Shown here: positions 6,002 to 54,817 of the stretch, one piece after another
How positions within the stretch are numbered: position 1 is the stretch's first letter
How the letters are laid out: every line of letters begins with the position of its first letter
Origin: Lepidodermella squamata
Taxonomy: Eukaryota; Animalia; Gastrotricha
DNA: 64,000 nt
NCBI GenBank assembly: GCA_047495785.1
Contig: JBLDXI010000010.1
Span: 682,001-746,000, forward strand
Reading direction: 5' to 3'
The notes under the pieces: generated by a model
The model's database searches: none
The model's input: only the letters and a program-made list of their open reading frames with translations
Told to the model about the DNA's origin: nothing
Made by a program: the position numbers and the translations under genes

Positions 6002-6178
6002 TTTCGTGAGCTAGTCTTGAAAGTTTCCTAATGTTATCTGAACCTCGAGCTCGCGGCTTTTTTCGCGTGGGTTTATCACCTTAACGACACTCCCTGTTAT
6101 CAAATATCAAGAGAAGGCTCGTTTTTTGTAGTTCAAAAATGCAAGATAAAAATCGATGATATCATAATTTATTTTGAT

Positions 6179-6994
6179 TCAAGCTTGTTCGATCTTTAAA
6201 GCTCTTCTATTGGCAGTATTAGCGGTAGTAGCTTCACTGCTTTCCGACAGAACCGGGGCGCTGTTTTTTGATACAAGGCCAGGTCCTAATTTGACCTTAG
6301 GTGCGAAAATGTGAGTCTGGGAGAACTCTCGGTAGAACGAAAGGATGTAAAATAGAACCATGATGCCTAAGGCCCATTCACAAGCTGCGCTTGAGACGTG
6401 CATCTCCCAACCTCCGTCAGCCGGGCGCCAGAACAGCTTAGTTTCCCCATCGAATTGAGCTCCGCCGATGTTTGCAAATGTGATCATCAAAACGAAGGTT
6501 AAAACATAGAATGGGATAAGAATTATTCTGAAAAACACCATCCATCTCGGTGTGATTACAGGTGAAGTTCGGCTAGCTATAACTGCGTCACTGATGAAGA
6601 AAATAATCGGTAGGCCGAACGCCATGAAGGCTCCTAGAAAATGGATTGCTAAAACGCTTGTTTCTTGAAAATTGGCGACAATTGAAATTCCTAGAGACGC
6701 CAGCCATCCAGTCCACAAGCAAATTTTATTAGCTCGCTCGAGGCCTTCGATATCGAACGTTTTAGAATAGGCGTGGACTTGAAGGTGGCGGAAGTAGATG
6801 ATTAGACTGAACAAGAATGCCGTCATGTTCAGCATCTGTCCGAAGACACAACTTTCCGGGACTATGGTGCCTGTGTCTGAGATGTATGGGAAATCTGCTG
6901 GTACGTGATGCGCTAGCGTTGCCATCAGGTATGATGTCAACAGGGTGAGCGGGAACAGCACCACCAGCGCGACCAGGTAATGAATTGCCAGCAT
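6179..6994 (-). CDS. DRAM/TMEM150 family protein, copy 2
   Basis: FPYISDTGTIVPESCVFGQMLN, VANFQET, HFLGA, SAACEW. Confidence 0.9.
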   Translation of the reverse strand: MLAIHYLVALVVLFPLTLLTSYLMATLAHHVPADFPYISDTGTIVPESCVFGQMLNMTAFLFSLIIYFRHLQVHAYSKTFDIEGLERANKICLWTGWLASLGISIVANFQETSVLAIHFLGAFMAFGLPIIFFISDAVIASRTSPVITPRWMVFFRIILIPFYVLTFVLMITFANIGGAQFDGETKLFWRPADGGWEMHVSSAACEWALGIMVLFYILSFYREFSQTHIFAPKVKLGPGLVSKNSAPVLSESSEATTANTANRRALKIEQA

Positions 6995-7201
6995 TGTAAT
7001 AGCCTAAATGTAATTAATCTCTACTTTTAATTTTCTTCTCTTGAAGAACGGAATAAAAAAACTGCCGCAGAAAGATAAGGATTTCCTTACCATGTAAAAC
7101 GATAAGGCCTTTTTTGCACCACCCCCAGGCCAATTACAAAATCCACCCACTGACCGCTGTACATTCATCGCCTAATTTTATTAGTTCATATCATGAGGTC
7201 A

Positions 7202-7993
7202 TCAAAGTTTGTATTCAAAATCGTTCTCATGTGTGACAGGATTTCTTCTAAATTTCGATGCGTCTAATACGACCTTGGGATGGAATTTGGCTGAAGGCTC
7301 GAATACATGTGAATGTAGGAACTCCTTGTAATAGGACAAGAGGTAGAATATGAGCAGAATTCCCATTGCCCATTCAAAGGTTGCGCTCGTAACATGAAAA
7401 CCCCAGCCGGCGTCTTTTTGAGTCCAATATTGAGGATTCGATCCGTCGTATTGGTTGCTCGCGATTGATGTCATAAGAAATGTCCCCAAGAAGGAAATAA
7501 TGTAACAAATTGTGATCAAAGTTCTCATCAAGGCAGCAGCTTTCGAGTTGAAGATGGAAACCAGCTTGAATGAAATCCCAAGGTCGCAAATCATGTATAT
7601 TATCGGGGATAAAAAGGCGAGTAATGCTCCGAGCATATGCATCAGGAAAACATTTGTCACCTGAAAATTAGCCACTATAGACATGCCGAAAGCCGAGATC
7701 CAACCGGATAGTAAACATGTCACGCTGAACGAATTCAATCTGCAAATTTCAGGGTGCTGTTTCGCATATTCTTGAACTTGAAGGTATCGAAAGTAGACTA
7801 TAAAGCCGAAGATAACCGCCGATAGATTCAAAAGCTGGCCAAAGATGCAGCTTTCAGGTACTATTGTTCCTGTTTCTGATATGAATGGGAATGCAGCTTC
7901 CGTATGCTCCAGAAAAACTGCGATCAAATAGGAAATGAGAACAGTGACTGGGAACAGCACTGTTATAGCTAATAGGTAGTAAATCATCAACAT
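7202..7993 (-). CDS. DRAM/TMEM150 family protein, copy 1
   Basis: FPFISETGTIVPESCIFGQLLN, VANFQ, HMLGA, SATFEW. Confidence 0.9.
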   Translation of the reverse strand: MLMIYYLLAITVLFPVTVLISYLIAVFLEHTEAAFPFISETGTIVPESCIFGQLLNLSAVIFGFIVYFRYLQVQEYAKQHPEICRLNSFSVTCLLSGWISAFGMSIVANFQVTNVFLMHMLGALLAFLSPIIYMICDLGISFKLVSIFNSKAAALMRTLITICYIISFLGTFLMTSIASNQYDGSNPQYWTQKDAGWGFHVTSATFEWAMGILLIFYLLSYYKEFLHSHVFEPSAKFHPKVVLDASKFRRNPVTHENDFEYKL

Positions 7994-14544: not shown

Positions 14545-16051
14545 CTACTGATGAATGTCTTTATTGGAAGATGAACTCAATTGGTATTTTCTCATCGCTT
14601 CAGCTAGCAGTTTTTTAAAATTTGATGCAAAAAATAAATCTCCAATGTATCGAGCTTGACGAGCTGCCGGAGTCATTGTTGAATCTTCAACAGTAAATCG
14701 ATCACTCTGAGATAGCCCATGCAGCTTGTGCAAATGTTGACCTCGCCATGCGAACCATTTGTTCACAACCTAAATGAAAAGCTATTTACTCTCTGAAATG
14801 CTTTGTTGCACCGAAAGTATACCCATTTTTCGCCTCTAATCACAGGACACGCTGCATGATATGTTCGATTATCGGGGGTCTCATCACGACGGAAATTATA
14901 CCAAAACAACGCAGCGCCTCTCTTAGGATCTACTCTGAGGCCTAACCGAGGGAAGACGGTCCCACCACCTTCCTTAACATCGTTGAGATAAATCAAGACG
15001 GTAGCGATTCGGTTCCCGACGGGTTTTAGGTATTCAACATCGAAAAGAGTATCCATATGCGGTAAGTAATCTGTAATAAAGATGTTTTTATCGCTAGGTC
15101 TTGAAATATGGGTAACTCACGTCCGCCTACATTGTATTGGCCAACTTGATACTCCTCGCAGCCTAATTCAGAAAAATCTTATAAAATCGTGGCGGGAACT
15201 TCATTCCTAATCTCACCATCTTCATGAGCATTCAATCCAGTGAAAGCTTCTATTCTTGCAGATAGATCTTTCAATAGATTATTCTCGATCCATGTAGTTC
15301 GCTGCTTTCGAATGTTGTAGTGATGAACGTGGCTACCCGATTCGTCCATAACCACGCTTTCCTCCAAGGTTGCTTTCGCCTCTTGTTTGATCAAATCTAT
15401 CTCCTTCGAGGTAACTATGTCGTGCAGGAAAACAATAGGCGGGTCTCGGCTGAGGATTTCTTCTTTCACCGGCGATAGAATCAATAAAGGATGCATGCCT
15501 CTATGGCTATAACGGCAGTAAAGGCTCGGGTTGATTGCCATCGCTCGTCTAGCCAGTCGAGCTAACTCATCTCGGCAGTTGTCATATCGAATAGATCGAC
15601 CAAGTTTCTTGGCTAATTCGCGTTGTTCCGATTTTGAGTGCTTCTCAATTTCGCCAACCTGGACAGCTACACTCTCGCTGATCTTCGTTTTACAGTGCAT
15701 TAGTTGTGGTTGGTATATGTGTAAACCCTCCTCGTCGAGTTTTTGCTCAAATTCCACAATTTTCTCGCAATAAGAGATGGCATCATCTTGCTTCTCCAAG
15801 CGAAACGCAGCTGTTTGGAGTGAGTCCAGAATTTCCATTCCATGAATTGAGTGTTCGGCATGCCTCAACTCGGCATTTTCCCAAACTCGCCACGCTTCTT
15901 TGAAAATTTCATAGGCCTGAGACCAATCGCCTTCGTCTTGAACTTTCTCGTGGGCCATGTTCCACAGCATAATTTCAGCTTCATCTCTGTAATTCGATAG
16001 GCAGCCATGAAAAGTATGGCAGAAAATAACTAGGGTGAGGGCGAATTTCAT
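14545..16051 (-). CDS. Prolyl 4-hydroxylase alpha-like (2OG-Fe(II)), copy A, 4 exons
   Basis: Introns 15163-15216, 15071-15120, 14770-14822. YLPHMD, GNRIATVL, HAACPV, GEKWVVNKW; signal peptide; one TPR-like module. Confidence 0.88.
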
Positions 16052-16296
16052 GGTGCGCCAGGTTAAAATGCCTGAACATCTGAATAGCGTTCGTTAAAAG
16101 AAAAAGGATATTGTACTTTTGAATACGCCGGTGAAAGCACGAGAGGGATTATACGCGTTACAAAGTGCATTACGTTCGTTTGTTTATTGTTGATACAATA
16201 GCGCTATTGTGAAGCAAGGAGAATTCTAGAAAAACACTCCGTCATAGTAATTTTTTTCTGATAGTCAAAGCAGTTAGATCTCAATCAATACATATT

Positions 16297-18105
16297 TCAG
16301 CCTATTTGCTGTTGTTTTCGCATCAAATCAATCATAATTTCACGCACACCCGAGTTAAAAAATAAATCACGGGTATAACGCGCCTGTCTAGCCGATGGAG
16401 TTAAATTTGAGTCATCTATCGTAAAATCTTGTTCCTGCTTGATTCCTTGCGGCTTATGTAAATGCTGACCTCTGAAGCGGAACCACTTGTTCACAACCTG
16501 CCCAATTTATATGGATGATAGATGAAAGCTGAATAATAGCTCAAAACTCACCCATTTCTCGCCTTTTATTACCGGGCATGCAGCATGGTATGTTCTCAAG
16601 TTCAGCGTTTCGTTTCGGTGGATGTTATACCAAAATAGAGCTGCGCCTTTTTTGGGCGTAGTTCTTAGGCCTAGTTGAGAGAATACCGTTGCTCCACCTT
16701 CCTCCACATCATTCAAGTACATTAGTACTGTAGCAATTCTATTTCCAACAGGTCTATGACCCTCTTCGTTGAGGAAAAGGTCGAGGTGAGGGGTATAGTC
16801 TGAAGGAGAGAAAATAATTTAAATTTCCACATGAAAAATCAACTCACGTCCACCGATGGTGTAATAGCCAACTTGGTACTCTTCGCATCCATCGGGGCGA
16901 GGATTTAGGCCAGTATATGCCTCAATCCTAGCATCAAGTCCTTCAAACGTAGTATTTTGAATCCAGGTTGTTTTCTGCTTTCGAATATCAGCATGCATCT
17001 CAATCGTACCTCCCTTGGCATCGTTTGTCACCAAACCATCTGACAAAGAGCTTGAGGCTTCCTGTTTCAACTTTTCTATCTCCCGAGTCGTTATGATGTC
17101 GTAAAGTAATACTATCGGTGGTGTCAGCCGCAAAATCTCTTCTTTGACCGGGGCGAGAAGTAACAGAGGATTTCTACCACGATTGCTGTATCGGCAGAAT
17201 AGCTTTGGATTCTTGGCAAGAGATCGGCTGATTCTCTTTCCAGCCTCTTCACTGCAATAGTCGTAAGTCTTAGTACTAGAGAGATCCTTCGCGAGCTTGA
17301 CCTGCTCATCGACGGGTTTCGAATCAATCTGAGCCACCTTTCTCAGAACAGATTTGTCGTGGTTGACTTTGCAGCTCTCAAATGTGTTTTTATACATTTC
17401 TCGCATTTCTGGCGTGTAATTATCCTTTTCAATCCTTTTACAAGTTTCCAAGCCCTCATCTAACTTTCCTAAACCGAAAGCGACAAATTGAACGTAGTCC
17501 AAGATTTGAATTGCAGGTATGATGTGTGGCAGCTTTAGATCCTCAGCCATTTGCCAGACTCTCCATGCTTCCTTAAAAGCTTCGTAGGCTTCTAGCCACT
17601 TGTTTTCTTGCCTGCCAAGTTGAAATCCTTTCTGCCAGTATTCTTTCTCGTTCCCGCCAGTGACCTCTGCGAGATCTTTATGCAGCCTTGCAGTTATTTG
17701 CTGTTTGAAATGTTGGTTATATTGCGTGAAATGAGCCTTTTTCTCCGTGTCGAGCTGAAAATCTCGTAAAATTCGATCCGTTGCATCGGCAGCTTCTTCC
17801 CATTTTTCGATATGCATAGCTGTAAATTGGACAAAATCCAGAATGCTGTATAAATCCACCGTATGCTCTGATTCGAGTTCTGTGGTCTCATTGTAAGCCC
17901 GCCAAGCTTCCATGAATTTGTCGAAGGATTCCCGCCATTTTTCTTGGCTTCTCAGCCCAACACCTTCGTCATAAAGCGCCCGCTCTGCACCTCCGTAGAT
18001 GAGTCCTTTGATTAGAATTGTTAATGCATCCCAAATTTCTGCGAATTGGCAACTGGCTGACCCAAATGTTAAAATTAGCAAAAATGTTATAATGGAGAAT
18101 TTCAT
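16297..18105 (-). CDS. Prolyl 4-hydroxylase alpha-like, copy B, 3 exons
   Basis: Introns 16800-16847 and 16498-16551. YTPHLD, GNRIATVL, HAACPV, KWVVNKW. Confidence 0.9.
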
Positions 18106-18420
18106 TCATGAAAACGAGCGTCAAAAAGCGCAATGATGGCTAATTTAGACGTTAGCAGATTGTTGTGGCTAATGCAAGGAATAGCTTGTTACAATATTGT
18201 TGTTGTACCAATAAGCCGAGCATGTAAAAATACGTGTTTCATTCGTATAACACATTATACCATCTATTATCTGGCTCTTCAGCGCCAGCCGAGGATTAAA
18301 GCCATTGTAAACGCTGCATTGCAACTATTTGAAAAGGTCTCATTCGAGTTTCAATTATCAAGATTTATTCTTTATCTGGTTTTCCATGAAGTGGCAGTTT
18401 TTATGGTGTCTTGAATCATT

Positions 18421-20231
18421 TCAGCCTGATTTTCCTCCTGTCATCAAAAATTCGAGTCCGGATGCGAAAAATAAGTCACTGGTGTGCTTAGTCTCCCGAG
18501 CTGCCGGTGTCATATCCGAATCGTTGACTGTAAAAATGTTTTCGCTCTCATTTCTCGCACAAGGCTTGTGCAAATGCTGGCCAAGATGGCGGAACCATTT
18601 GTTCACAACCTGTAACAGACATCGATAAAAAAATGACCAGTGAAAGTAATAGGATCTATACCCATTTTTCTCCTCTTACAACAGGACAGGCTGCATGGTA
18701 AGTTCTTGGGTCGACATTATCATTACGATCGGTGTTGTACCAGAATACCCCCGCTCTGTAGGTCGCGTTCACTCGGATACCGATTCTAGTGAAAACTGTA
18801 CCGCCTCCCTCTTCGACTTTGTTTAGATAAAGTAGGACAGTTGCAACTCGGTTTCCAGCTGGACCAGCTATTTCAGCAGAGTGCATGTAGTCCGCATGGG
18901 GCATGTAATCTAGACGTGTTGAGGAATTATGGAATTTAATGTTGACTAGAAGGTAACTCACGTCCTCCGATTCTGTAATTCCCAACTTGATAGTCTTCGC
19001 AGCCGGCATCGTAAGGATTCAAACCCGTGAATGCTTCAATTCTCTTCGAGAGTTTGGGTAGATGGTAATTCTTTATCCAGCCAGTTTTCTGCTTCCTAGT
19101 AGCTGTAGCGATATCGGTTTTACCTGATTTTTCGTTGATTACGCCTCCATCGTCCAAAGAATTGTTAGCTAGCGACTTAATCAATTCGGTTTCTGCTGGC
19201 ATGACTAAATCGTATAGTAAGACCACCGGGGGATTAAGGTTTAAAATTTCCTCCTTCAGAGGTCCTAAGATCAGCAAGGGATGTCGATTTCGATGGCTGT
19301 ATCGGCAGTACAAGTTTTTGTCTGAAGCTAATCGGCTGGCAATCTTCATTGCAACATCATCACGACATAACTCGTAGCCGACGGAATCTGCAAGTTCCTT
19401 CGCCATTTTGACTTGAACCTCCAACGGCTTAAGCTCGATATCTTTAATCTTTTTAGCAACGCGTTCACTCAGCTTCTGAGTGCAAGTCTGCTTACTAGCT
19501 TTGAATGATTCAGCCATTTCGGGTTTAATGTTAGGTTCCTCATCCATCAGCTGCTGGCATAAATTGTAGCCTTCCTCGTTCAGACCAAGTTGAAATGAGG
19601 CAAATGAAGCAAAATCAAGGAGTTGATGTATAGGTACGAGATGAGTTAAGTTGAGCTCAGCAGTTTTCTTGTAAGCTCTCATGGCTTTTTTAAAGTTTTC
19701 GTATGCCGATCTCCAGTCTTGTCCTTTACCGTGTACCTGGCCCCTATCCCAGAAGGTTTTTTCCGTGCCTCCCACTGCATCCACGACAGGCTTGTATTCC
19801 TCGGGTATGATCTGCTGCTTGTAATTGTTAAGATTCGTTTCGATCCGATGCTTAACCTCCCCCGCGAGATTTTGCCCCAATTCTCGAAGGATAAAGTCGC
19901 AAACTTCGACACCAATCTCGTAGTGCCCGCTTTGACCAGCCGAGAATTGGATGTAGTCAACAATAGTGAAGAGATCAGTGGAATGTTCTCCGCCAACTTC
20001 ATTCGTGTAGTTGTAGGCCCTCCATGCCTCGATGTATTTCACCATCGCTTCTGCAAGTTTCCTATCGACATGAAGAGTTCTCGCTTCATCAAATCTCTGA
20101 CGCTCCTGGTCACCAACAAAGAATGACTCGATAACAATGCGAACCGCATCGATAAGTTCAGTGAAAATTGCATTTGAGCTGCTGCTGTAGCTTAAAAATA
20201 GCGCTAAAGTCAGAGCAAAAGTCAAATTCAT
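18421..20231 (-). CDS. Prolyl 4-hydroxylase alpha-like, copy C, 3 exons
   Basis: Introns 18910-18961 and 18610-18661. YMPHAD, GNRVATVL, HAACPV, KWVVNKW. Confidence 0.9.
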
Positions 20232-20474
20232 CTGTATGATAACTGCTGCAGTTTAATAAGGAAATAAGCTGCGCATCTTAAAACGCTACAATACTACTTA
20301 CAACTTCATCAACAAAGGCAGCGTATGCGTGGTACTCTTGACGATGTTCAATAGACTGTAGCTTTTGTTCACTTTAATTAGCATATCATTTTTACGTTTT
20401 CAAAGACAAGCATGCAAAATTTACTGACAAATGAACAATACAAAAAAACAAGGGTTAACATGAGCCATTCGATT

Positions 20475-22343
20475 TTATTTTTCCGGTTTATCAATATTTC
20501 TGGAATCTTTAACAGTGTAGCCCAATTTTTCCATTTCTTTTCTCATCAGATAATCAACAGCTGAAGCAAAGAATAGGTCTGGCGTGTGCTTCGTCTTCCG
20601 CGCAGCCGGCAACAGGTTCGAGTCGTGAATAGTGAAAGACTGTTCGGGAGTTTTTGCGCATAATTTATGCAAATGCTGGCCAAGATAACGGAACCATTTG
20701 TTTATCACCTGAAATGAAAGAAAAATCCATGAAATATGGAGTATTCGTATATTCAAGATTTCTTACCCATTTTTCGCCACGTATAACAGGGCAGGCAGCA
20801 TGATACGTTCTTGTGTCACGAGTCTCATTCCTATGAATGTTGTACCAGAAGAGGCCAGCTCGATACGTTGCGTTCACGTGAATTTTTAGCTCGGAGAACA
20901 TTGTACCTCCTCCCTCTTCAACTTCATTGAGATACATGAGGACTGTAGCAATTCGATTGCCAACGGGAGCATTGTAAGGATAGTCCAAGAAGTAGTCAGC
21001 ATGAGGCATGTAATCTGTAAAAAAGGATCAGCTATAACTCAAAAACAAGAGAGGCAAGGCTTACGTCCGCCGATGTTGTAGTGGCCGATTTGGTACTCTT
21101 CACAGCCATCATCGTAAGGATTCAACCCGGTGAAAGCTTCGATTCTCGCTATCAATCTTGGAGCTAGATCATTCCTAAGCCAAGTCGTTTTCTGCTTCCG
21201 TTCGTTAGTATGCGGCTTGTTGCCTCCAGTTGCATCGTCAATCACAGACCCAACGCCTAGTTTGGGCTTAGCTTCTTTCTTAAGCAGTTCAGCCTCATCC
21301 TTTGTTATTATGTTATGTAACAGTACTATTGGCGGATCGAGATTCATCACTTCCTCGCGGAGTGGGCCTAAAATAAGCAATGGATGCCTCCTACGATTGG
21401 TGTAGCGGCAAAACAGCTTAGGATTCGCGGCTAGATTTTTAGCAATTTTCTGAGATTCTTCAGGTCTGCAAGGGTCGTACTTCGTCGTACTGGCTAGCTC
21501 TTTCGCGAGCTCGACTTGCTTTTCAACAGGTTCATTGTCCATTTCCAAGACTTTATCCGCAACATGGAAAGCTTTCGCATTCTTACATGATAGGGAACTG
21601 GCTTGGAATTGATCCTTCAATTCCGCAGCGATGTTCTTACCGTGGTCGAAAAGTGCTTCACACATCGCCCTGCCCTCCTCCTTAAGGCCGACTTGATAAG
21701 CCGCGAAGGATGCAAAGTCTAGCAGTCGGAATAGCGGCAATTGATGCGGGAGACCAAGCTCGTCTGTGATATTATAAACTTCCCAGGCCTTTTTGAAATT
21801 TTCGTAAGCTGATTTCAGATCATTTCTCTGCTGCATAGCCTCCATTCCCTTCACCCAATAGTCCTGTTCAGTTCCACCAGTAACTTCAACCAATTCTTTG
21901 TAGATTTCTTGAGATGCGGCATATTGATATTGCTGGTACTGCTGATTGAGCCGATTTTTGGTTTCGAGGGTCATTGAGTCAGCGAGATCTCTCAGCATCA
22001 TTTGGATGACCTCTGCTGCGTAGGAGAAGTTACCAGCCCTACCAGCGGAGAACTGAACGTAGTCCATAATTGTGAAAAGGTCGACAGAATGTTCGGCTCC
22101 GACTTCATTCGAGTAGTTGTAAGCCCGCCACGCATCGACAAACTTCGCAAAAGCTTCACTATTGTTGCCAGAATTGAGTAGGGCACTAGCTTCACTGAAA
22201 TCATATCGTTCCTGGCTTCCGGCGAAGAATGAATCGATTAGGATTTTGCCGAATTCGATCAGTTCTTCGACAAAAGCCTCGCTCTGTGACACGTGGCATG
22301 TCAGCAGAAGGAGAACCACGCAAAAAGCGGGTCGAAAGTTCAT
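20475..22343 (-). CDS. Prolyl 4-hydroxylase alpha-like, copy D, 3 exons
   Basis: Introns 21015-21064 and 20709-20766. YMPHAD, GNRIATVL, HAACPV, KWVINKW. Confidence 0.9.
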
Positions 22344-26804: not shown

Positions 26805-27789
26805 AAATACTTACGTTGCGTAACCCTAATTAAAAAGTGTTACTTATAGCTCGCATTTTTCTTTCAGTTCGAGTTTTGCTTTATTACATCGTAACAACTA
26901 CGACAACAAGACGGTCAAATGCCAACACTTGAACTTATTTATTCGGAGTGTTCATGGGTATATAAAAAGTAAAATGGCGCGAACGTAAAAGTCTCTAGAA
27001 TATTCCTGACCAATCATAATTCTGTACAACTAGTAACGTAGCAGGTCGCCATTGTACAACAAAGGGGGGAATTCGAAACTCGGATTTTTGCTCGACACGT
27101 CAGGAGTTCCGAAATCTCAACGAAGGACACTTATCGCCAGAGGTCAGCGCATGCCAAATTCATGAAAAGCATGGTCGAATTCATTATATAGTAGCATGAA
27201 AAGATGCGCGAAACAGAAAAAATATGTTCACTTCAAGCATATGCTATGGCTATGTATGCATGTATCACATAGCTAAGTCGAGTCAAACAACTCCTTAGGG
27301 GTGAAGGGTAACTCCCCGGAACTTCTACTGTTGTTTTTCGTATTCAGCATGTTTGATTTAGTAAGTAAGTGATCTTAGAAGATAGGATAGAAGATACACT
27401 GAGTCTCGAGTAATCTCGCAAGAGAAGAATGGTCTTAGTTCACTTGACGTAAGTAAGGGACCGTGCCGAAATAGGCGCATTTTCGGCAGTCGGCGGCAGC
27501 AAGTAGCAGCGGATAACAGGCAGCAACAGGCGCGAGTAGTAGCTCGCATACGACCATAGCGCGCGGCGGCGCGGGGCAGACCCGCGCGCGCGCGTAACCG
27601 CCCAGCAGGGTGTGCTCGCAAAACAATGGGACAGTTATGCGTTCGCGTCGCCTAGTCGTTTCTTAGCATTATTAGAACATGAGCTGATTATTTTAACGTA
27701 GCAAGACGAAAAAAGTTAATTTCATTGAATTTTATTGGTAAAAAACGACCTCATGAACCAACACGAGTTCAATAACAATAATAATAAAA

Positions 27790-29852
27790 TTACAGACTAC
27801 TGATGTTTGCAGACAAGACAAATCGATTCAGTGGTGTCGATGTCATCGGTGGCGGCGCCGGCAAGTTGATAGCATGACTAGGATGAAATGGGCGAGCAAT
27901 TTGAGCCACCGGCCGCTGGCATGATAACGACGTTGGGGTGGACACAGAAGGAGTGGCAAGCTGCGCGGGACGTTCGTCGACCAAGGCAGACGGGGTGACG
28001 AGAGTCACAGGAATTTCGGCGGCCGCCGCCTTTTTCGCCGCTTGCGTTTCGCCTCGCCGGACTTTGGCCAGCGCCGACTCAACAAATGAAGTAGCACAAA
28101 GCGATGATGAATCGTCGGCGCAATAACGCATCGACAAACGGGTGAGTGCTTCCATCGAAGCGTCGCAGGTCAGCAGTTGTTGCGCGTCCGCCATGCTAAA
28201 AAATAGATGAAGAAAAAATTATTAAAAATTTCACTTTTGTTAAAAAATTTCATTATTTTTCATAATTCCAAAAAAATAAAGCAAAAAATACATACTTGTT
28301 GTCGACTAATTTTGTCAGGACTTCGAACGCGAAGCTGGTTGCTTCTTTCTTCTTATCGCCGGCGATCAGTGACAGTTCGACCCGAGACAAGCGCGTGGCA
28401 CCCAGGGCCACTCTTTCGTTGTTAACCGACAAGGACCGCAGCGTGTCGTCGTCGAGTTGACGTGCGGCGGGCGCGCCGGCCTTGGCCTGCTTACCGGCGG
28501 CGGCTTTTACGCGCAGCATCAGCAGCTTCTTGAGTCGAGCGCGGACGTGCGGCACGACTTTGTCGAGTTGACTGCGCTGCATAACGTCTTGTGTCACGGT
28601 GACGCGAAGACTTTTGAGTTCCGGCAGTTGCAAGAAATTTTTCAACGAGCTGAAAAATAATAAAAAAAATTAAAATCGGAACAATTATTTTTGTTTGAAT
28701 ATTTTAAATATCTGGTTATTTAGGAGAGAAAACTCACTCTTTTTTGCTGGCAGCCAATCGACGGCATATTTCGTAGAACAATTCGGAAGGCGATTGCTTC
28801 AGCCCTTTCTCCAAATCATCGATGCTCGATGCTGTGAAAAAAAAATAATATGAATAAAAAATATAAAACCAAAAATCAAATTAAATTAGAAAAATCCGGA
28901 ATTTTCCTAGGAATGCTAGATGAAAACAATTCTCACCGGAGATGAAATACCCGTCTAGCTGAATGTTTGCTGAGCCAGGGAAGTGAGGAAGAACGGGTGC
29001 CGGTTGGGCGCGGCGTTCAGTGAGGCGCTCGGCAGTCAGCTGCGCTTCCGGCTCGACTTCGTCCTCCCAGTCGTAAACAAATGAACCACCGCCGCGCATT
29101 GTTGGTAGCGACGTGGCCGCGCCACTTGAGGCGGTGAAAATGCGAGGCTGAGTACTGGCAGAAGACGGCGCTGGGCGAGTCGAAAGACGGCGAGGCGAAG
29201 GCGAACTGCTCCTGGCCGCACTTGATGACGACGATGACGACGACGCCGATGATGACGATGATGATGATGCGGCTGACGAGGACGACGACGACCGCGAGAG
29301 AGACGACCGAGAGCGGCGAGACTTGAAATTTGACGACGGCGAGGCATCGTCAGGTCGAGCGCGCTTCCGACCACGTCCAACCGCCGCCAGTGCCTGACCA
29401 TCAGAGCTAGTGGTGGCATTGAGAACAGTCTACAAAAAAATAAAATAAACAATATATTTATTAATTTTAAATTAAATTAATTTTTTTCAATTTTTTAATT
29501 TAATTAAAAAATTTGGAATAATAAAAAAACAATAAAACCTTGTGCTAACCTGAGGAAATGTACCGCGAAGTTGCAAGAATTCAACAGGAGGCCCGGTTTC
29601 GCGATCGTCGAGTTTCAGGCCATCGGGCAGATCGAGGTAGAAGTTATTCGCCCAGAACAAATCGCGGTCGACAAAGCCGAAGCAGTACTTCTCGCCGCGC
29701 TCAATTTTCGCGTGAAATTGAACGGCCGTCGGCTGTGGCTCGACGAGACCGCAGTAAAAGTAGGTTCGCGGCCCTGGCCGTTTATCGCGAACGCAATCGG
29801 CAAAACCAACGGCAGAGAGCGTTTTCGTAGATGGGATAAAAGTTCGTGGCAT
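27790..29852 (-). CDS. Transposon-borne accessory gene of unknown function, 5 exons, ~549 aa, Ser-rich middle, NLS-like RGRKRAR
   Basis: Exons 29852-29550, 29429-28937, 28831-28738, 28649-28296 and 28195-27790 total 1650 nt. All junctions are GT-AG and in frame. Confidence 0.75.
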
Positions 29853-29978
29853 TTTACGACTCGAAAGACGAATTTGACTTCAAACTAAAATTTTCTCTGT
29901 TTTAAACACCCTGACTTCAAAGCGCGGCCGCCAAACACAGACACACACCCGCGGTGTCGAGGATGCAGGTGTGGAACG

Positions 29979-31725
29979 TTGCGGTTGGGAGCCGATTTCA
30001 GAACCGCACCTGTCATTAGCGCACCTGTTGACGGGTCGCTATTTGATCGTGATGATGCTGCAGCTGGTGTTACGCTCGATGAATGCGTTGAAGAGTGTCA
30101 GCTGAACGGTTTTAAGTGCAGCCGCTCTTCAGTTTATCGACTGTTTCCGGCTTCTAACAAGAAACACAAGAATTCTGCGAAGACGCATCGCGCTGTCATT
30201 GGTTTGAAGTTACGGCCCAAGCGCTGCGATCTGCGAAAAGGCGATGAAAAACTCGATCATCATCGGAATGCGCGCATGACGTACCTCGACGAGTTGATGC
30301 TGCAGTTTCCTGATGACTTCACCTTTTTTAGCTGCGATAACAAAAACTCGATCGTCGTTGGTGACACGTGCGTGACCAAGTTGTGCCAAAACAAGTACTA
30401 CTACTTCGAAGGTGAACAGCCAAATTTGCCCGACCACAACTTTCCGGCTGATAAACACCTGAAAATTGTCCCCGCCGGCTACGAAAGACGCGAGCAGCCG
30501 TACGTGAGCGATTCTGGCCGCGTCAAGTGGCGCAACGCGGAGGTCGTCGTCGTAAACCGGTGCCGGCTTTTCAACGAGTGCGGCATAGCTGATCACGTGA
30601 GTGACCTCGCCACTCATGCCCTGAAAAATTCGCCCCGCGGCGGCGCACCATGCTTCGTTCTCGTCGTCGACGCCGGGCCCGACTGGCGGATCGAATATCC
30701 TAATGTGCGGTATATGTATTGGCGCTTGTTTTGCGAACTCGGCCTCGAGGCGATGATCGTCGCGCATTACGCTCCAGGTTACAGTTTTCGAAATAAGGTA
30801 AATAATATTGGTCACAAATAAAATCTCAGGAATTTTCTAAAATTTAATAAACTTTTAAAATTTATTGAATAAACAAAATAAAATAATTTATGTTCATGTT
30901 TTATTAGATTGAACGTCGATGGTCGAAGAGCAATCGGCTTTTAGTTGGCCACACTACGTCTCATCCGGACAAATGGCTGGATCAATATCCTCTGGCAAAG
31001 GACAAGCCGGTACGCGAACGATTAGCCGCCGAGTGCGCGCTCAAACTCGTGACTGAGCTCATCAATGGGAAACCGGCGGAGAAAGGCGTGCTCTTCTACT
31101 GCGTGGCTGAGCGCGCCGCGGCCGACCCGCGGTTCGTCATCACCCCCGCGGAGCACGACTTCATCAACACCGCGAAGCCGAACGCGGTGGCTGTCGAGCA
31201 AAATCAGGACTTGTACGAAGACCTGATTCTCATGGAAAAGCACATCGACCTGTAAGCCTTTTTTCTTTCATTAATTTATTTTCAAACTTTGAAGCTGAAA
31301 TTAATTTTGATTTTTTATTAAAAAAAAATTCAAAAAAATTGAATGCTAAAATTAAATTATTATTTTTTTTCAATTTCAGCCGCTGCGGCCAGGTCTGTTT
31401 TACTCGGTGCGAGGATTCAGCCTGCGTACATTGCGGACAGCATCCGCCGCCCGCCTCCGGCCTGTGGAAGTACCTGAATCAACACGGCGTCCCCGACCCC
31501 GAGTACGACGATTCTCGGCCGGGTCAATACAAGAAATTCGCCGATGTGTTTGAAGCCCGGCAACGCAGCGCTGCTGTTGAGGCAACGAATCCGCGGCCGC
31601 CGGCTGGTCGTTGCGAAATTTGCCCATCATATAGCTTTTTCAGCGAGATCCACAAAACCAGGCACACTAATATGATGCATCCCGAAATTTTGAAAAAAGG
31701 AAATAAAAAATGTCGGAAAGATTGA
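29979..31725 (+). CDS. DDE transposase (Zator/ISAzo13-like) with C-terminal Cys/His zinc-finger motifs, 3 exons, start unresolved
   Basis: Introns 30798-30907 and 31252-31379. HTH-like GFKCSRSSVYRL; SCDNK, LPDHNF, VDAGPD, HYAPGYSFRNK/IERRWS (compare ISAzo13 PPGTSKWNKIEHRLFS); CEIC..H..H. Confidence 0.8.
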
Positions 31726-33079
31726 TAATATGCGAGTTTAGATTTATTTTTGAAAAACGTTTGACAAATAAAGAGGCGACATAATATTTGAAATTGTTGT
31801 TCATTTTGTTCCTCTTCGCTTTTCGAAAACAACGTGTGTTGTATACGTGCACAGTCCCTCCATTGTGTTTGTATCGCGCGACGGGACTGGCGCTGAGAAG
31901 GCGGCGGACCGCACACTGTGTGGGGGTGGGACTGGCACTGCGAGGCGGCGGGCCGCCCGCGGTTTTGGTTACGAACGCGAGCGGGCCTCATGCTGGGCTA
32001 TAAATTTGACGACAAACAGCGTTTCACCTATTTATATAGCAAATTTGAGGCTGCTCCCATGTGTAACAGTCTACTGTGGCCTGCCGTCAACTCCGCCGCC
32101 AACCTACACCTGCACCGGCCTGCCACGGCCTGCCACTGATTGCTGCGTTTCGGCATGGCCCCTAAGCATGAACTTCCGATAGTTTCAAAAAGACGACCCC
32201 AATGTGTTTAAACATACATTGAATACGCAGCATTACTAAATCAACCATGCAGAGCAAGAAAGACATTAGGAAAAACTTTGAGGAGTCACCCTTCACCCCT
32301 AAGTATGTAAGATTACGCCTTACGCAAGGTATACCTATGTAAGATGAAGGCCTGTGAATTAGACATAATTAATTTTTTTTCGATTATCTGATCTTCCACA
32401 TGAATTTCTAATCAATTCGACCATGCTGATCACGAATTTCAAATACCCCGACCCCGGGGTCGCGTCCTTGGGCAAGATTTCGGAACCCTAAGGTCAGGCG
32501 ACGCGGCGACCGGCGACCTGAAAATTTGAATTCCCCCGCAAATGCGTTACCATGGAAAATTTAAAATTTAAAATAATTAAATTTGAAAATATTAATCAAG
32601 TTTTAAATTTTAAATTATCTATATAAGAAAATTAAAACACGTTCAAAATAAGAAAGCGCTTGATTTCTTTTTTGGCTGTTTTGACGCCGCCGGTTTGACG
32701 GAGTCAAAAAGTCCCGCCTTCCCGCCTATAACTTTTTATTCTCTATCTACTGATATCAAATTTATGATTGTAGGCCATACGGAAGTATGATATTAAGCGT
32801 ATGCGTCGAGCGTTCAATCAGCGTTGAGAAATTCAAATCTCAGCCGTTGAGTACCTCCGCCGTTTAGTAGTTTAGATTATAGGGCGAGCCAATAACAAGC
32901 GAGAGTTGTTATAGAGTGCACCAATTAGACGCAAGCGCGCGAGTCAGTGGCGCGGATCACTAATACGCTAGCACTAATATTTACATATGTTACACAATTC
33001 TCACCTTTAAAATAACCTGATAAGGATGATGCGATAGTAATAATTCAAGAAATGATAAGTTTCGCGCTTGATTTTAAAA

Positions 33080-34195
33080 GGACGTGGCTATGTGAACACA
33101 GTGAAATGTGTGTCACGCAATGGCTATGCGTACCCAATGTGTGTGGCGTGATGGCTACTTGAAGACAGTGTGTTTGCGTGATTGGCTACTTGAACACACC
33201 CACTGTGTTTGCGGAAACGGCTAAGCGTACCGACCCCGGCAACTACAGGTTTTTCACTTAATCGGTAATAATGAGGTGATTATTGACAGCGGAAGACAGA
33301 ATTCATTCATTGTGGAGTATAGGCTATAAATGCAGGTAAAACAGGGTCATGTTAACCATAAAACTTCACCATGTCCGAGTCAGTTTCTGAATCAGTTGTT
33401 CCCGATATTATCAAGGACCGTTTTCAGTCGCGCCACGACCTCGTTTATCTCGAATTCGAATTTTCACCGGCCACAACACCGACGGTTCAGCTGCACCACT
33501 GCGGAAGTGACCATTGGGTCGCAACTTCAACCATCACAGTCGGTCAATTACCGCCGCACGGCGTCAAGTTTCAAGTTAATGAACAGCCTGGCAGGGCCCA
33601 TCACCGAGCCGCTTCGAAGGCAAATTACCGAGCGCTATTCAACGTCGGCCGTTAATGGCTAAATTCCGGTGCACATCTTACCGGTGAGCCAACAAGCCAA
33701 CGGCTACGATGTATACGCGATCGCCTATTGCGTCGAGTTGTTAAATGGCAACGTTCCCCGCCGCGCACAGTTCGAGGCGTCGCGGATGCGCGGTCATCTT
33801 CTACAATGCCTGAAAAATCGTTTACTCACAACGTTTCCATCAGTGCCACATCGTGGCCGGTTGCCGGCGGTCAAAACTGAACTCCTGGAAGTCGAGCGGG
33901 TGACGACATTTATCGCCGGCGAGTTTTCAATCGCAAAAACTAGTTTTTTTACTGCATTGTTACTTTGGTGTTGTTCTGTTTATATGTCTCACCTTTTTCT
34001 AAACAAAATCAGCGGAAAATTTGGAATAAAGCAGGTTCGTTTCCGCTGTCAATATAGTGTTTTCCGGGTTAAAATGAGTGTGTTTACATAGCCAATAGCG
34101 CATACCCAGGTATTAACGCCCGCTGTGTTCAAGTAACCTATGTGTACGCATAGCCATTGCGTGATACACAATCCTGTGTTCACATAGCCACGTCC
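33080..34195. mobile_element. Non-autonomous Mutator-like element (MULE), 9-bp TSD
   Basis: TIR GGACGTGGCTATGTGAACACAG... with subterminal repeats; TSD ATTTTAAAA at 33071-33079 and 34196-34204. Confidence 0.85.
33371..33930 (+). pseudogene. Frameshifted Ulp1/SENP-like (C48) cysteine protease fragment inside the MULE
   Basis: VQLHHCGSDHWVATS, QQANGYD-VYAIAY (catalytic CG missing), MRGHLLQCL; split over several frames. Confidence 0.65.
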
Positions 34196-34429
34196 ATTTT
34201 AAAAGAGCTTGAATTTCAGTAAGATGATAGGTCAGTGAGAGTTCTGTGCTGAAGGTTCAATGCACCGGCAACTCCACAGTCCGTAGTTGACGAACTAATT
34301 TTGTGAAGTGAGAGAACTGAGTCAGAAAGTTGCATGCAACGATAACCAAGCATGCGGCGGAGAGCGCCGTTTGAAGATTCCGCCCCTGATTAGCAAATAT
34401 CACTGATATAAAGCAGGACTGATAGAGTA

Positions 34430-35661: not shown

Positions 35662-36135
35662 TCAAACTTCGACGTGGCTTTTTTCGTTGGCATTCAAAGG
35701 CGGAGTTTTACTGTTGTTATTAGTCGTAGAAATCGTTTCGGGTGCATGTTCTCCCAGGAATCGGACGACGTCGAAGTGGCCTCTTTGAGCGGCGATCCAA
35801 AGCGGAGTTACACCATCGATATTAGCCAAAGAAATCGTTTGGGGTGCACGTTCTGCCAGGAATCGGACGACGTCGATGTGGCCTCTTTGAGCGGCGATCC
35901 AAAGAGGAGTTTCACCGATGCTACTGGCCAAAGAAATCGTTTCGGGTGCTTTTTCTGCCAGGAATCGGACGACGTCGATTTGGCCTCTTTGAGCGGCGAT
36001 CCAAAGCGGAGTTACACCATCGATATTAGCCAAAGAAATCGTTTCGGGTGCTTTTTCTGCCAGTGATGGAACATCATCGATGTGGCCATTTTCAGCGGCA
36101 ATCCAAAGCGGAGTCTCGCCGCTTAAATTTGTCAT
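35662..36135 (-). CDS. Ankyrin-repeat ORF with near-identical 102-bp (34-aa) tandem units; possibly a fragment
   Basis: G.TPLWIAAQRGHIDVVRFLAEKAPETISLA x4 plus a partial unit. Confidence 0.7.
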   Translation of the reverse strand: MTNLSGETPLWIAAENGHIDDVPSLAEKAPETISLANIDGVTPLWIAAQRGQIDVVRFLAEKAPETISLASSIGETPLWIAAQRGHIDVVRFLAERAPQTISLANIDGVTPLWIAAQRGHFDVVRFLGEHAPETISTTNNNSKTPPLNANEKSHVEV

Positions 36136-36254
36136 AGAAGTCGTCACAGGAGTTTGACTGGTATTGCTATCAAAATATAATGAATGATTATTTTTGAAAG
36201 GTGTTCGATCAAATTGCTCCAGCTCCTACGAAGTTCTCTATGGATCCAGCCATC

Positions 36255-36514
36255 ACTATGGAGCGTGTCATTTTGCATCAATAAATAGGGACATGCCCCA
36301 TTCTCAATGGTGGGTCAAGAAACATAAAATTCGATTAATATAAAGAAAGTACTACACTAATAATAGAAAATTAATGTTCTTGCTACGTACTTTTTCCTTT
36401 ATTCTTTATTAGTGTAGTACTTTCTTTATATTAATGGAATTTTATGTTTCTTGACCCACCATTGAGAATGGGGCATGTCCCTATTTATTGATGCAAAATG
36501 ACACGTTCCATAGT
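36255..36514. mobile_element. MITE/foldback element with near-perfect inverted arms of about 110 bp
   Basis: ACTATGGAGCGTGTCATTTTGCATCAATAAATAGGGACATGCCCC... is mirrored at ~36405-36514. Confidence 0.8.
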
Positions 36515-36746: not shown

Positions 36747-36810
36747 TTTGCAGCGAGTCGACCTTCTTTAACTAATACGAATTCGTTAAAGAAGGTCGAC
36801 TCGCTGCAAA
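36747..36810. repeat. Perfect hairpin with 26-bp arms and 12-nt loop
   Basis: TTTGCAGCGAGTCGACCTTCTTTAAC / GTTAAAGAAGGTCGACTCGCTGCAAA. Confidence 0.85.
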
Positions 36811-37400: not shown

Positions 37401-39414
37401 CGAAGTAGGACCGCGGAACTCGTGGGTATAACTAAGATCGACATATGGGGCCCCCTTTGGTCTATGGCTGAGCTCACCGTATGGATCGATGGAACTGGTA
37501 GGGATGATCCCTACTATATCTAACGGTACCTCGCTCTCTGATGTGGTCGGCCACACAATGTTTTGACATGTTTGCGTGATGTTTGCTGCTGTAATTGCGG
37601 TGTCAAGCATGCCGCGAACTCGAGGGAGTGGCCTCTGCGCCAGCCTTCGGCGGGCTGAAACGGAAACTACACTGGGTGATTTCGGAAGATATTGCAATTT
37701 TAAGACGGGTTGAGTGGTAACTGGGGCTTCTAACGAAATCCTAGTTGCCACTGCTCAAAATTTGGGAAAGGGAGTGTTTTGCTTTCAATAGACTTGATGT
37801 TCGACGAACCGTAAAGCCGGTCCGACTGGCTTTACGAAACTTAATCGCGACTCCGTACGTGTTTTCGTGGCTTCAAGCGAATCACCGCAGCGCTGTCGCA
37901 CGAGACAGAAGGCCCGGTGTTTTAGATGATACCAAAGAACGAATCAAGAAGAAAATCTTTAAAGAGCTCAAGAGTTTTAATACGTAGGCGTTTGGCTGTC
38001 CAATCACCTTTGCTGGACGCCGCACTTAGAACCCGTCTCGTCCCGACCTCTCCCTCGCATTTTCGCCCTTTTTCGCGGAAGAGTAAAGACGCACCCCACC
38101 TTAGGCCTCTTGTTTTACAAGAGCGTTATCAGGCCGCTGTTGGAATTCGGTGCTCCGGCGTTCGTGCCCTATTGTGTCATAATTTTGCTTACTTTTTCGA
38201 GGCTCGATATCTACTCACCTGAGGGGTCCCGGCCCCATTTTCGTTGGCAGGGACCTCAGTTAGGGTCTTGGCTTCGGTAATCCGTCGAAAAAATTCGACC
38301 CCAATGCCTTTTGTGAGTGTTGCAGCAGGTGTTGTGACGCAAGAGACCGATTATGTCAAATTAGGGGCCGGCGCCTATTTCGTCATAATTTTTCGACCAA
38401 CGGTCCTAACTGTCATAATGAGGTCTAGATTGATTTTTTCGGCCTGCCTTCATTGGAGCAGGTAAGTCTAGGTCTTCTGCAAGTGTTTAAGGCGGCCTGT
38501 CAGCGGCGTGTGGCGGTCCACGGAAGCAACGACCCAAATAATAATTCCAGTTTGTGAATCAGGATACCCACAGGGTCCTAATTGAGGGGATTGAGGGGAT
38601 TGAGTGGAAAGGTAAAAGTGTCACCCCAATTAGGGCTATTTTTTCTGGTATAGCACGCAAAATGACGATGCAGTGAAAAGAAGAGGAATACACAATTTTT
38701 ATCCGGATTGTATCGTATAATATGCTTTCTTAATGTTATGAAATGACAAAACACTCTTGCAAGCAGAGATTCTTTGATTCTAAACAAAGAATCCCTTCTA
38801 AACATCATTAATATTTTTATATCAAAAAATGCTCGCTAGTTTAGAATATATTACAGAAAACCCCACTTGACAAGCACGCAAAAAGATCCAAAACATTCAA
38901 GCAACACTCCTTATTCGATTTATTATAAATTATATAATATATTTATATAATAAATTTATTATTATAATTATAAATAGACTGGGTGAGAAATAAGGGAATA
39001 CTCTATGGCTAGCCATGGAGAAATAAAATTTCCCCCTGATCTGGAACCCCGAGTGAGTTTGGCACAGCCAAACGAATTGAGGGGTTCCAGAGAGGTTCCA
39101 GGTGTTCCCCGCCGAAACCCACTATTTTATCGTCTTGGAAGCAAATTTCACATGAGAAACGCTGCTTTTGCCTCTATTTCAACGAGAAACATAACATTCC
39201 ACGTGATTCCAAGATGTAGCATGTAGCGTTTCTCACATTTTCGAACCCTTCCCAGCGGGAAAATTGGCCTTTTTAAAATTGTCAACAATTTTATATTACC
39301 AAAACCCATATTTTCCGCAATTGCATCTTTGGAAGAAAGAAAATGGCATCACTGGGGCTACTATCTGTAATATGGTTGTTGTTTAATTCATTTTTTCGCT
39401 TCTGCCTTTCACTG

Positions 39415-39714
39415 ATTATGTTTCCGTATTGCAGGATCAAAGTCCTTGAGACTAATACTCTAGAGTATTAGTCTCAAGTCAAAGTCCACGTGGTCATGTG
39501 GCATGAATAGCTAGTTCTGAGGCGTTTTTTTCGTCGTTTCGTCGTTTCGTGGATCCAACCCATGGTTCTAATCCTTAAGGTCCCGGGTTCGAATCCTCCT
39601 TCATACATCGTTTTTATTTGTTTCGTCCAATTTTTCTATGAGATGACGAAGTGACGAAACGATGCTCATGCCTCATGACCACGTGACTTTGATCCTGCAA
39701 TACGGAAGCATAAT
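39415..39714. mobile_element. MITE with inverted arms, an internal tRNA B-box-like motif and a nested 34-bp palindrome
   Basis: ATTATG.TTCCGTATTGCAGGATCAAAGTC..CACGTGGTCATG.GGCATGA mirrored at ~39665-39714; GGTTCGAATCC at 39586-39596. Confidence 0.75.
39445..39478. mobile_element. 34-bp perfect palindromic insertion with 8-bp TSD
   Basis: TCAAAGTC-CTTGAGACTAATACTCTAGAGTATTAGTCTCAAG-TCAAAGTC; absent from the opposite arm of the MITE. Confidence 0.8.
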
Positions 39715-40147
39715 GCCCCCCTACATCGTCATTTTGTGAGCTATATCAAAATCCTTTTTCCCATGAAAACATTCGTCGAAATGAGCGAATTGCAGCAATT
39801 CGTAATATTGCAAAATCTTTAGGGCACACTGTATAATCACATTAATTACTTACCGATTTGAAATGAGCAAATCAATTTCGTTATTGAAAGTGGATTTGAT
39901 TAGTCTGAAAATGACCCAACCCAAGGCGCAGTCCAGTACTACGACAATGAAGAGGAGCGCAGCGACTTTCAAGATGCTAACGGCCTGGTTCTTCCACTTC
40001 AATGGCTTCAGCTTGTTGCCATCGCCCACGTCATCTATTCGAACTGCGGGCGCAGTTTTCGCAAGCGCCGACTCCTGAGATAAAAGTCAGATGAATTATG
40101 TAGACATGAATCATTGACATTTTTTAAGTTAATTTAGAAGATATGTA

Positions 40148-53315: not shown

Positions 53316-53975
53316 ATGTTCGTCCGCATTGCTTTGGTCGCTGCTCTCTTTGCCGCCGTCTTGGCCGCCCCTCAGGGTCCTCCTGCGGCCTCTGGCTCTG
53401 GCCCCGTTGCCCGCAACCCCCACGGCCCTCCCCATGGATCTCAATCCCATGAGCACTCTGCTGAGCACTCCGACTCCGAGGAATCATCCGAGGAAGAGGA
53501 ATCTGAAGAAGAAGCGGAAGCCCGTCAGCAGCAGTCTGGTTCGGGAGTTGCCCAGTCTCGTCAGCAGCAGCAGTCTGGCTCTGGCTCTGCTGCCCTCAAG
53601 GCTCGTTGCAACAAGAGGTCCACCACTCAGAGGGCCGCCGCTGCCCGCCAGCAGTCTGGCTCTGGCTCCGCTGCCCCAAAAGCTCGTTGCAACAAGAGGT
53701 CCACCACCCAGAAGGCCGCCGCTGCCCGTCAGCAGTCTGGCTCTGGCTCCGCTGCCCCAAAAGCTCGTTGCAACAAGAGGTCCACCACTCAGAAGGCCGC
53801 CGCTGCCCGTCAGCAGTCTGGCTCTGGCTCCGCTGCCCCCAAGTCTCGCCAGCAGCAGCAGTCTGGCTCTGGATCTGCTGCCCCCAAGGCCCGTCAGCAG
53901 CAGCAGTCTGGCTCTGGCTCCGCTGCCCCCAAGGCTCGTTGCAACAAGAGGTCCACCACCGCCGCCTCTGCATAA
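53316..53975 (+). CDS. Secreted low-complexity tandem-repeat protein (orphan)
   Basis: Signal peptide MFVRIALVAALFAAVLA; His/Pro-rich then Ser/Glu-rich block; 81-nt repeat QQSGSGSAAPKARCNKRSTTQKAAAAR; AATAAA ~54157. Confidence 0.8.
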   Translation: MFVRIALVAALFAAVLAAPQGPPAASGSGPVARNPHGPPHGSQSHEHSAEHSDSEESSEEEESEEEAEARQQQSGSGVAQSRQQQQSGSGSAALKARCNKRSTTQRAAAARQQSGSGSAAPKARCNKRSTTQKAAAARQQSGSGSAAPKARCNKRSTTQKAAAARQQSGSGSAAPKSRQQQQSGSGSAAPKARQQQQSGSGSAAPKARCNKRSTTAASA

Positions 53976-54817
53976 GCAAATCTTGCCTTTTAGTTCCGTC
54001 CAGTTTGTGATTTCTCTAATATCGACTTTCTTCGATTCAACATCTGCTATGCAACTGACAGAACTCCTTTTCCGACACCTTACTTGCGTCAGCTGCAAGA
54101 GAAGGTTGCTTTGTTTCAGCTGCTTAGTTTCTTCACCTTTCGCCTTTTTAATGGAAAATAAATATATTTGGAATTCAAATAACTGCAAACGGTAACTTCT
54201 ATTTTTTCTATAATATAATTTACGGAAGACATGAAGGGTATATGAGCTTATATTCGCATTTAGGTCTAAGGCGCTCCAAAAATTGAGTCCAGTGCTGGAT
54301 CAGAGATCAGAGTTCGGATGTAATGAAACCCCATTGGTCATAATCCGAAAAAATCGTCCAAGCGAGCTCCAAGGATCGAAATGTAGGGCTTGATCAGAGG
54401 TTCCTGTTCCATGCTGAAACTAGGGTGTTGGAAAATGTGCTGAAATCAGCTGGGCCGATAAGGCGATTTCGATTGTACTGCTAAATAACGAGTTTTAACT
54501 TTTAACATATAGAGAGGCATGCAACTCCGGGACACAGCTTTTTCCATCTCACTTCGGTCACTCCATGTTGGTCACATGAGTTATTTGCTGTGTAGGTTGA
54601 AGTTAACGCCTCTTCCAAGTGCAAAATATATCCTCACGAACGCATAAGAGCGCTATTCGATGAACTGATGACGCTCTGGGCAGCATCTCCGATTACATTG
54701 GAGGGTACGTGCGATATACGATAGTTGGAGAGGATGTGGTTAATTAATTGCAAGACGTAGAATTCAGGATATAAATATCTGTTTTGATTCACAACGAATG
54801 ATTTCATCTGAAACGAT

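Follow-up and report, generated by a model that had tools for sequence, protein, structure and literature searches.

A two-gene Zator-like transposon with revised ends and an orphan second gene in a gastrotrich contig

Zator counts as a superfamily with a single gene, close to ITm elements (IS630-Tc1-mariner), where separate helper proteins are unusual. Here, we analysed a 64,000-nt window of the Lepidodermella squamata assembly (contig JBLDXI010000010.1, positions 682,001–746,000) and found in it a two-gene Zator-like transposon with revised ends and an orphan second gene. The sequence around the element is compact, gene-dense, eukaryotic and animal-like, and the element itself lies in a tract of GC-rich coding blocks interleaved with very AT-rich ones (27.3–32.3 kb). 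It carries a transposase gene on the plus strand and, diverging from it, a second gene on the minus strand, referred to below as ORF2 (ORF, open reading frame). We propose, with a probability of about 45%, that this is a divergent Zator (TP36/ISAzo13-related) cut-and-paste transposon whose ORF2 product would serve as a Harbinger-like DNA- or chromatin-binding helper. If true, the resident second gene would bring the two-protein design of Harbinger, CACTA and Kolobok to the Zator branch and provide a testable system for helper recruitment. The gain is incremental, as many other superfamilies have known accessory genes and the function of ORF2 is only proposed.

Two head-to-head genes of similar style

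Splice junctions were read from the DNA sequence alone, the joined spliced frames served for local translation and counting, and homologue searches of both proteins were run on single exons. On the minus strand, ORF2 comprises five exons, namely 29550–29852 (aa 1–101), 28937–29429 (aa 102–266), 28738–28831 (aa 266–297), 28296–28649 (aa 297–415) and 27790–28195 (aa 415–549), which together encode 549 aa with no internal stop. The four introns separating them (120, 105, 88 and 100 nt) are all GT-AG and 77–89% AT, and, among the eight donor combinations tried, the five-exon model is the single stop-free one. Exons 1–4, including the short third one, have exactly one stop-free frame each, and consensus splice sites connect precisely those frames; exon 5 has one frame in which the terminal stop is the only stop. 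Such joining would be expected by chance with a probability of only ~1/81. The second exon contains the basic motif RGRKRAR, a Ser tract (58% Ser over aa 137–195) and an acidic patch. Thus, the intact 5-exon gene for a ~549-aa protein that the initial annotation placed head to head with a transposase is borne out, together with the basic motif and poly-Ser tract noted in its product. Both genes end in AATAAA poly(A) signals, each accompanied by a U-rich stretch, 40–55 nt past the stop; that of ORF2 is at 27731–27736 (minus strand), and the transposase has its signal at 31767–31772 (plus strand), ahead of a stretch rich in U and GU.

The transposase gene consists of three plus-strand exons (29979–30797, 30908–31251 and 31380–31725), which, when spliced, yield a 502-aa frame that reads through, as had been claimed earlier. 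The first exon carries a helix-turn-helix (HTH)-like motif, matched by HTH_7 at E=0.04, below the cut-off, and putative catalytic D residues at 30336 and 30669. The segment HYAPGYSFRNK-IERRWS, with the putative catalytic E (30911–30913, exon 2), is formed only once intron 1 is removed. The putative triad thus reads D120, D231 and E275, with spacings of 110 and 43, as judged from family motifs and not from an alignment. Exon 3 adds a tail that is rich in Cys and His, contains a C2H2-like motif and has a basic end.

The view of this gene as intact calls for revision. The frame is open from 29889, and its first in-frame ATG, at 30276, lies downstream of the HTH-like segment; the lone nearby ATG, at 29963, is out of frame. 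With no in-frame ATG before the HTH, this copy of the element may not be autonomous; the transposase could depend on an unusual start or have suffered damage at its 5′ end. Candidate solutions, any of which may apply, are a 49-nt or 31-nt intron from 29971 (in phase, but GC-rich and with a weak donor), near-cognate starts at ACG 29976, TTG 29979 or TTG 29985, or a small indel. We rejected two further ones: a leader-supplied AUG (no in-phase AG nearby) and a 127-nt intron from ATG 29963 (HTH helix 1 would be lost). A micro-exon at 27429–27448 has a perfect donor but lies outside the best-supported element ends described below. The gap between the divergent frames (29853–29978), which contains the out-of-frame ATG and would be a short bidirectional promoter driving both genes, is indeed as short as the ~130 bp reported initially, but it spans the distance from the ORF2 ATG to a TTG, not to an ATG.

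Several other reading frames and signals accompany the two genes. A 105-codon open frame at 29571–29888 (plus strand), antisense to ORF2 exon 1, is in the transposase frame, separated from it by one TAA, and has no ATG and no Pfam match. A 155-aa antisense ORF at 31524–31991 (minus strand), also without a Pfam match, crosses the 3′ end of the transposase gene and possibly represents an antisense regulatory transcript; ~50 nt upstream of it, the right subterminal region contains an inward-facing TATA-like box (32030–32045).

Intron style and codon usage tie ORF2 to the transposase. All six introns of the element (88–128 nt, 77–89% AT) exceed the length range, and most exceed the AT range, of 13 candidate host introns chosen by a frame-joining heuristic (48–58 nt, 62–77% AT), with Mann–Whitney p values of 0.0007 for length and 0.0008 for AT content; for the ORF2 introns alone, p=0.004. 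Similarly, synonymous codon use in ORF2 is better explained by a transposase model than by a host model (log-likelihood +24, or +23 without the Ser tract), while all 12 host genes of the window that served as controls fit the host model (12/12). The GC content at third codon positions is 0.59 in ORF2, 0.62 in the transposase and 0.48 in the host genes. Because the introns and codon use of ORF2 match those of the transposase and not of the host, a recent capture from this host is unlikely. ORF2 is therefore probably a long-term resident of the element and not freshly captured, which lends support to the earlier view that the second gene belongs to the transposon. What this match speaks to, as far as composition can tell, is a shared history of the two genes, not function.

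Revised ends and probably nested shells

Initially, the element was delimited by GG-initiated terminal inverted repeats (TIRs) at 27298/32299. The inverted repeat at this site is real (27294–27364/32233–32303; 71 nt, 77% identity, z ~8 versus shuffles), but the ends of the element are better supported at 27457/32162, where there is an exact TAA target site duplication (TSD). All three plus-strand TNAGG motifs in 27000–27750 are paired with a minus-strand partner at the right end, each with its own inverted repeat, and we refer to the resulting layers, from the innermost outwards, as L0 (27457/32162), L1 (27298/32299) and L2 (27103/32488). Each of them begins with GG, and both genes are enclosed by every candidate end pair.

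The best-supported ends of the two-gene element are those of L0, which spans 4706 bp. Its 15-bp TIRs (27457–27471 on the plus and 32148–32162 on the minus strand) agree at 13/15 positions (p<0.0004 in anchored and ~0.007 in unanchored shuffles) and are flanked by identical TAA copies at 27454–27456 and 32163–32165. Inside them lie subterminal GGCAG repeats, at offsets 28, 38, 62 and 118 from the left end (27485–27579, plus strand; p=0.001) and 28, 38 and 77 from the right end (32081–32134, minus strand; p=0.018), so that the repeats at offsets 28 and 38 are mirrored exactly. The TIRs of L1 (27298–27364, plus strand; 32233–32299, minus strand) are flanked by TTA on the left and TAA on the right, and those of L2 (27103–27186, plus strand; 32409–32488, minus strand) by TCA and TAA. 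Both pairs of flanks are off by one position, leaving L0 as the only layer with an exact 3-bp TSD. A fourth and weakest layer, L3, is represented by the end-like 10-mer GGGGGAATTC at 27065–27074 (plus strand) and a right end-like 10-mer at 32528–32537 (minus strand), with no clean TSD.

When the inner layers are removed in silico, L1 shrinks to a 293-bp and L2 to a 382-bp shell. The two shells align with each other over ~230 bp in opposite orientation (p<0.002) and have in common the motif GCATGGTYGAWTT, which is matched at four places in the window and nowhere else, namely in the four L1 and L2 arms. Of the L2 arms, the left arm of L1 is similar to the right one (p<0.001) and not to the left one (p=0.17). 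The TIRs described initially probably belong to a shell resembling a miniature inverted-repeat transposable element (MITE), which itself sits inside a homologous shell. Given that an exact TSD is found only at L0 and that L1-left resembles L2-right and not L2-left, we favour, as the rather more probable arrangement, a two-gene copy that landed in a MITE of a sister family, itself within a homologous MITE.

The same four end-like pairs could instead form one compound long terminal repeat of 300–470 bp, similar to the inverted repeat/direct repeat (IR/DR) type, in which case the mobile unit would be 27298–32299 or larger. We consider this possible, though less likely. It would account for the centring of the end pairs on a single symmetry axis within ~27 bp, three near-central insertions being improbable at random, and for the L1 TIR (18/20) being better matched than that of L0 (13/15). 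The TSDs argue against it, exact at L0 and one position off at L1 and L2, as does the cross-wise similarity of the L1 and L2 arms; moreover, the alignment of the emptied shells in opposite orientation fits independent insertion better than duplication of an end. In the nested arrangement, the near-central site of each insertion would be accounted for only if related elements share a conserved site that the family targets, which may be so. Should the nesting result from targeting into related MITEs, it would be a rare example of an animal DNA transposon that chooses its targets within its own family.

Within the L1 shell, GTAAGTAAG occurs twice, at 27361–27369 and again at 27449–27457, where L0 is inserted. 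A similar motif, GTAAG, is present in the L2 shell, ~16 nt from the insertion site of that shell; together, these constitute a candidate targeting motif. The element was seen as one copy, with no second copy of it or of its enclosing shells elsewhere in the 64-kb window.

A possible helper role for the ORF2 product

The proposed role rests in part on domains recognized by eye. The aromatic-rich first exon of ORF2 was modelled from its single sequence as five strands, the last of them preceded by a short helix, at a predicted local distance difference test (pLDDT) score of 46, and this fold is compatible with a Tudor/PWWP SH3-like barrel, for which aa 25–78 would be the candidate region. The region of aa 373–465, which starts in exon 4, predicted from its composition to be helical, and ends in exon 5, ahead of a Pro/Ser-rich tail, looks BEN-like; it is cut by intron 4, and neither half matched PF10523 or anything else. 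We offer this Tudor/PWWP-like plus BEN-like layout as a hypothesis. BEN proteins of animals and viruses are described as regulating transcription in a sequence-specific manner (PMC5704228).

In the mechanism that we envisage, the transposase, which has only a single HTH-like motif and is hardly extended at its N-terminus, would cut at the 15-bp TIRs and insert the element at TWA sites. The ORF2 product would be nuclear, with a β-barrel reader-like N-terminus, a basic nuclear localization signal (NLS), a Ser-rich linker and a helical BEN-like C-terminal domain, and would bind the mirrored GGCAG subterminal repeats, the transposase or both. Such binding could aid end recognition, nuclear import or target choice, comparable to the Myb-like protein of Harbinger. 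A helper role would fit with the shortness of the transposase at its N-terminus, with the mirroring of the subterminal repeats and with the NLS-like motif of ORF2. The second protein of Harbinger binds both the element ends and the transposase and brings the latter to the nucleus (PMC9179366), and lineage-specific accessory genes have been described in Kolobok (PMC9587614). A stronger version, in which an obligatory two-component Zator lineage relies on a reader-plus-BEN-like protein that recognizes the ends in place of a shortened transposase and directs the element into Zator MITEs of sister families, would also explain the Russian-doll nesting, but we regard it as rather improbable.

A number of observations weigh against the helper role. 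ORF2 has no homologue in any of the sequence searches, exon 4 included; Pfam, NCBIfam, PDB and contig scans of its exons were blank, and no Tudor, PWWP or BEN match was found in Pfam or NCBIfam. Nor did its exons match a Myb/SANT/MADF domain of the type expected of such a partner. The single-sequence folds are of low confidence and match nothing, the best hit in a structure search with the exon 1 model being to unrelated proteins at Z 4.0. Likewise, the transposase has no relative by Pfam, NCBIfam or sequence search, and its single exons did not match the ISAzo13 profile in Pfam or NCBIfam. Since basic motifs are also present in the transposase itself, an import partner may be needless; shared composition could also come from a passenger that has long travelled with the element; and only a single copy was seen. 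For ORF2 exon 1, the sole match among 1.84 billion representatives, a salamander repeat protein, was rejected as summed weak repeats (best 27 bits), and the ESM Atlas pointed to DUF1036 at 0.85, with low recognition.

Instead of assisting transposition, the ORF2 product might act on the subterminal repeats as an element-encoded chromatin or anti-silencing factor that keeps the element transcribed and takes no part in cutting or joining, for which VANC, a factor of the Arabidopsis transposon VANDAL21, provides the model. The introns and codon usage that mark ORF2 as a probable resident gene are equally consistent with this role, and so are the reader-like plus DNA-binding-like layout seen by eye and the sequence-specific transcriptional regulation by BEN proteins (PMC5704228). 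The domains, however, rest on the same by-eye reading, and CpG is not depleted in the window (observed/expected ~1.0 outside and 1.4 inside the element), which makes DNA methylation an unlikely target of ORF2. We rate such a chromatin or anti-silencing function as unlikely.

Still less probable, in our assessment, is that ORF2 is an old passenger, acquired from a previous host or from some other mobile element, which has no role for the transposon and is intact because the copy is young or because the gene benefits the host. There is a precedent in amphioxus, where Zator-1 arms moved the host gene tesDwb (PMC12905397); moreover, only one copy was seen here, and its exact TSD suggests a recent insertion, so that intactness alone proves little. 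Against a passenger stand the intron size, AT content and codon usage of ORF2, all in agreement with the transposase rather than with the host, the close head-to-head arrangement, in which ORF2 has a poly(A) signal of its own, and the lack of resemblance to any known cellular gene in the exon-wise searches. In addition, an inverted-repeat scan detected no pair enclosing ORF2 alone. Of these readings, the helper role is the one that we prefer.

Affinities of the transposase and its neighbourhood

The transposase is very probably Zator-like, in agreement with the Zator/ISAzo13 kinship put forward in the initial annotation. The kinship is supported by the motif order, the ESM Atlas lead, the GG termini and the 3-bp TAA TSD. 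The order HTH, first D in SCDNK, PDHNF, DAGPD and APG...ERR is what we take to be typical of Zator, and Bao et al. in 2009 are said to have described Zator TIRs as short and starting with GG. In the ESM Atlas, the nearest neighbours of transposase exon 1 are unnamed eukaryotic clusters from Mucoromycota and Rotifera (0.87–0.88), and the only named family nearby is PF07592 (DDE_Tnp_ISAZ013; 0.83–0.85); all of these scores are below 0.9, that is, sub-threshold, and serve as a lead only. Zator has been paired with ISAzo13 (PMC5718144) and is found among fungi in Rhizophagus (PMC5751038), and the amphioxus Zator-1 generates 3-bp TAA or TTA target duplications (PMC12905397). No match to exon 1 was found in the protein database, in metagenome, viral or genome contigs, in plasmids or in PDB, and a search of metagenomes with the TIR pattern returned one match, which we rejected as due to chance because it lies in a GC-rich, bacterial-looking coding region.

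That the transposase belongs to another IS630/ISAzo13-derived lineage, possibly one known to have two genes, would accord with the missing profile hidden Markov model (HMM) match and the Atlas scores below 0.9, but is very unlikely in view of the GG termini, the TAA TSD, the DD43E spacing, PF07592 as the sole named Atlas family, and the lack of a C/DxxH-type Kolobok layout and of a TTAA TSD at L0.

While the short GG-initiated TIRs, the 3-bp TAA duplication at L0 and, putatively, the motif order are shared with Zator, the element differs in its resident second gene and in a transposase N-terminus that is very short and has no in-frame ATG. The second intact gene departs from the usual single-ORF organization, which is typical of Zator but not strictly defining. 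Unlike Zator-1 with its 33-bp perfect TIR, it has a 15-bp imperfect TIR plus subterminal repeats and is nested in sister MITEs; and whereas in amphioxus a recently copied host gene is carried as cargo with a whole Zator-1 element on either side, ORF2 is an internal gene beside the transposase. Bacterial TP36/ISAzo13 (PF07592), the nearest named family by language-model features (0.83–0.85), is set apart by the spliceosomal introns, eukaryotic poly(A) signals and second gene seen here, with no HMM-level match.

PIF/Harbinger elements, which produce 3-bp TWA-type TSDs, similarly combine a transposase with a separate, fast-evolving and putatively DNA-binding partner, but theirs are an IS5-related transposase and a Myb/SANT protein, neither of which was detected here; the transposase exons have no Pfam match to the IS5-like DDE_Tnp_4 of PIF/Harbinger, and the Atlas points to ISAzo13. 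A lineage-specific second gene in a DDE superfamily is also a feature of Kolobok (PMC9587614), which differs in its 4-bp TTAA TSDs and in its accessory proteins (KolX, nucleases and RecQ), none of them ORF2-like; here, the flanks, TAA/TAA or TTA/TAA, stand directly against GG/CC. Finally, the ITm-related Tc4 (PMC11071193) has a CTNAG target with a TNA duplication, which the TNA-GG junctions resemble, but Tc4 is DDD, in contrast to the putative E at spacing 43, and lacks a counterpart of the second gene. In the literature, with Repbase reports and the founding paper lying outside the scope of our search, we found no description of a two-gene Zator or of a Zator accessory gene.

Other mobile sequences lie downstream of the element. 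A 1.13-kb element at 33072–34203 combines near-perfect TIRs of ~30 bp with a second pair of 39 bp further inside; it has TTTTAAAA at either end (possibly a TTAA target) and a TATA-like box at 33326. Its broken frame (33372–33655, then 33663–33899 and on) resembles a Ulp1/C48 protease fragment by eye, which Pfam did not confirm. Further inverted-repeat elements occupy 36255–36514, 36747–36810, 39415–39714 and 38643–39751, including a 109-bp fold-back that is 98% identical, and tandemly arranged ankyrin repeats of 102 nt (Pfam Ank_2, E=1e-42) lie amid mobile-element-like sequence at 35665–36175 (minus strand).

An Rfam scan returned nothing above threshold. The host genes of the window include two tandem arrays (1708–7993 and 14700–22343) of five single-exon DRAM/TMEM150-like and four prolyl-4-hydroxylase-like genes, named by eye, two CNDP-like dipeptidase genes, several genes with an ANF-receptor domain and an ankyrin/SOCS-box gene at 474–1550. 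At 53316–54195, GC-rich tandem repeats of 81 and 45 nt, open on both strands, encode a secreted-looking Gln/Ser/Gly/Ala repeat protein.

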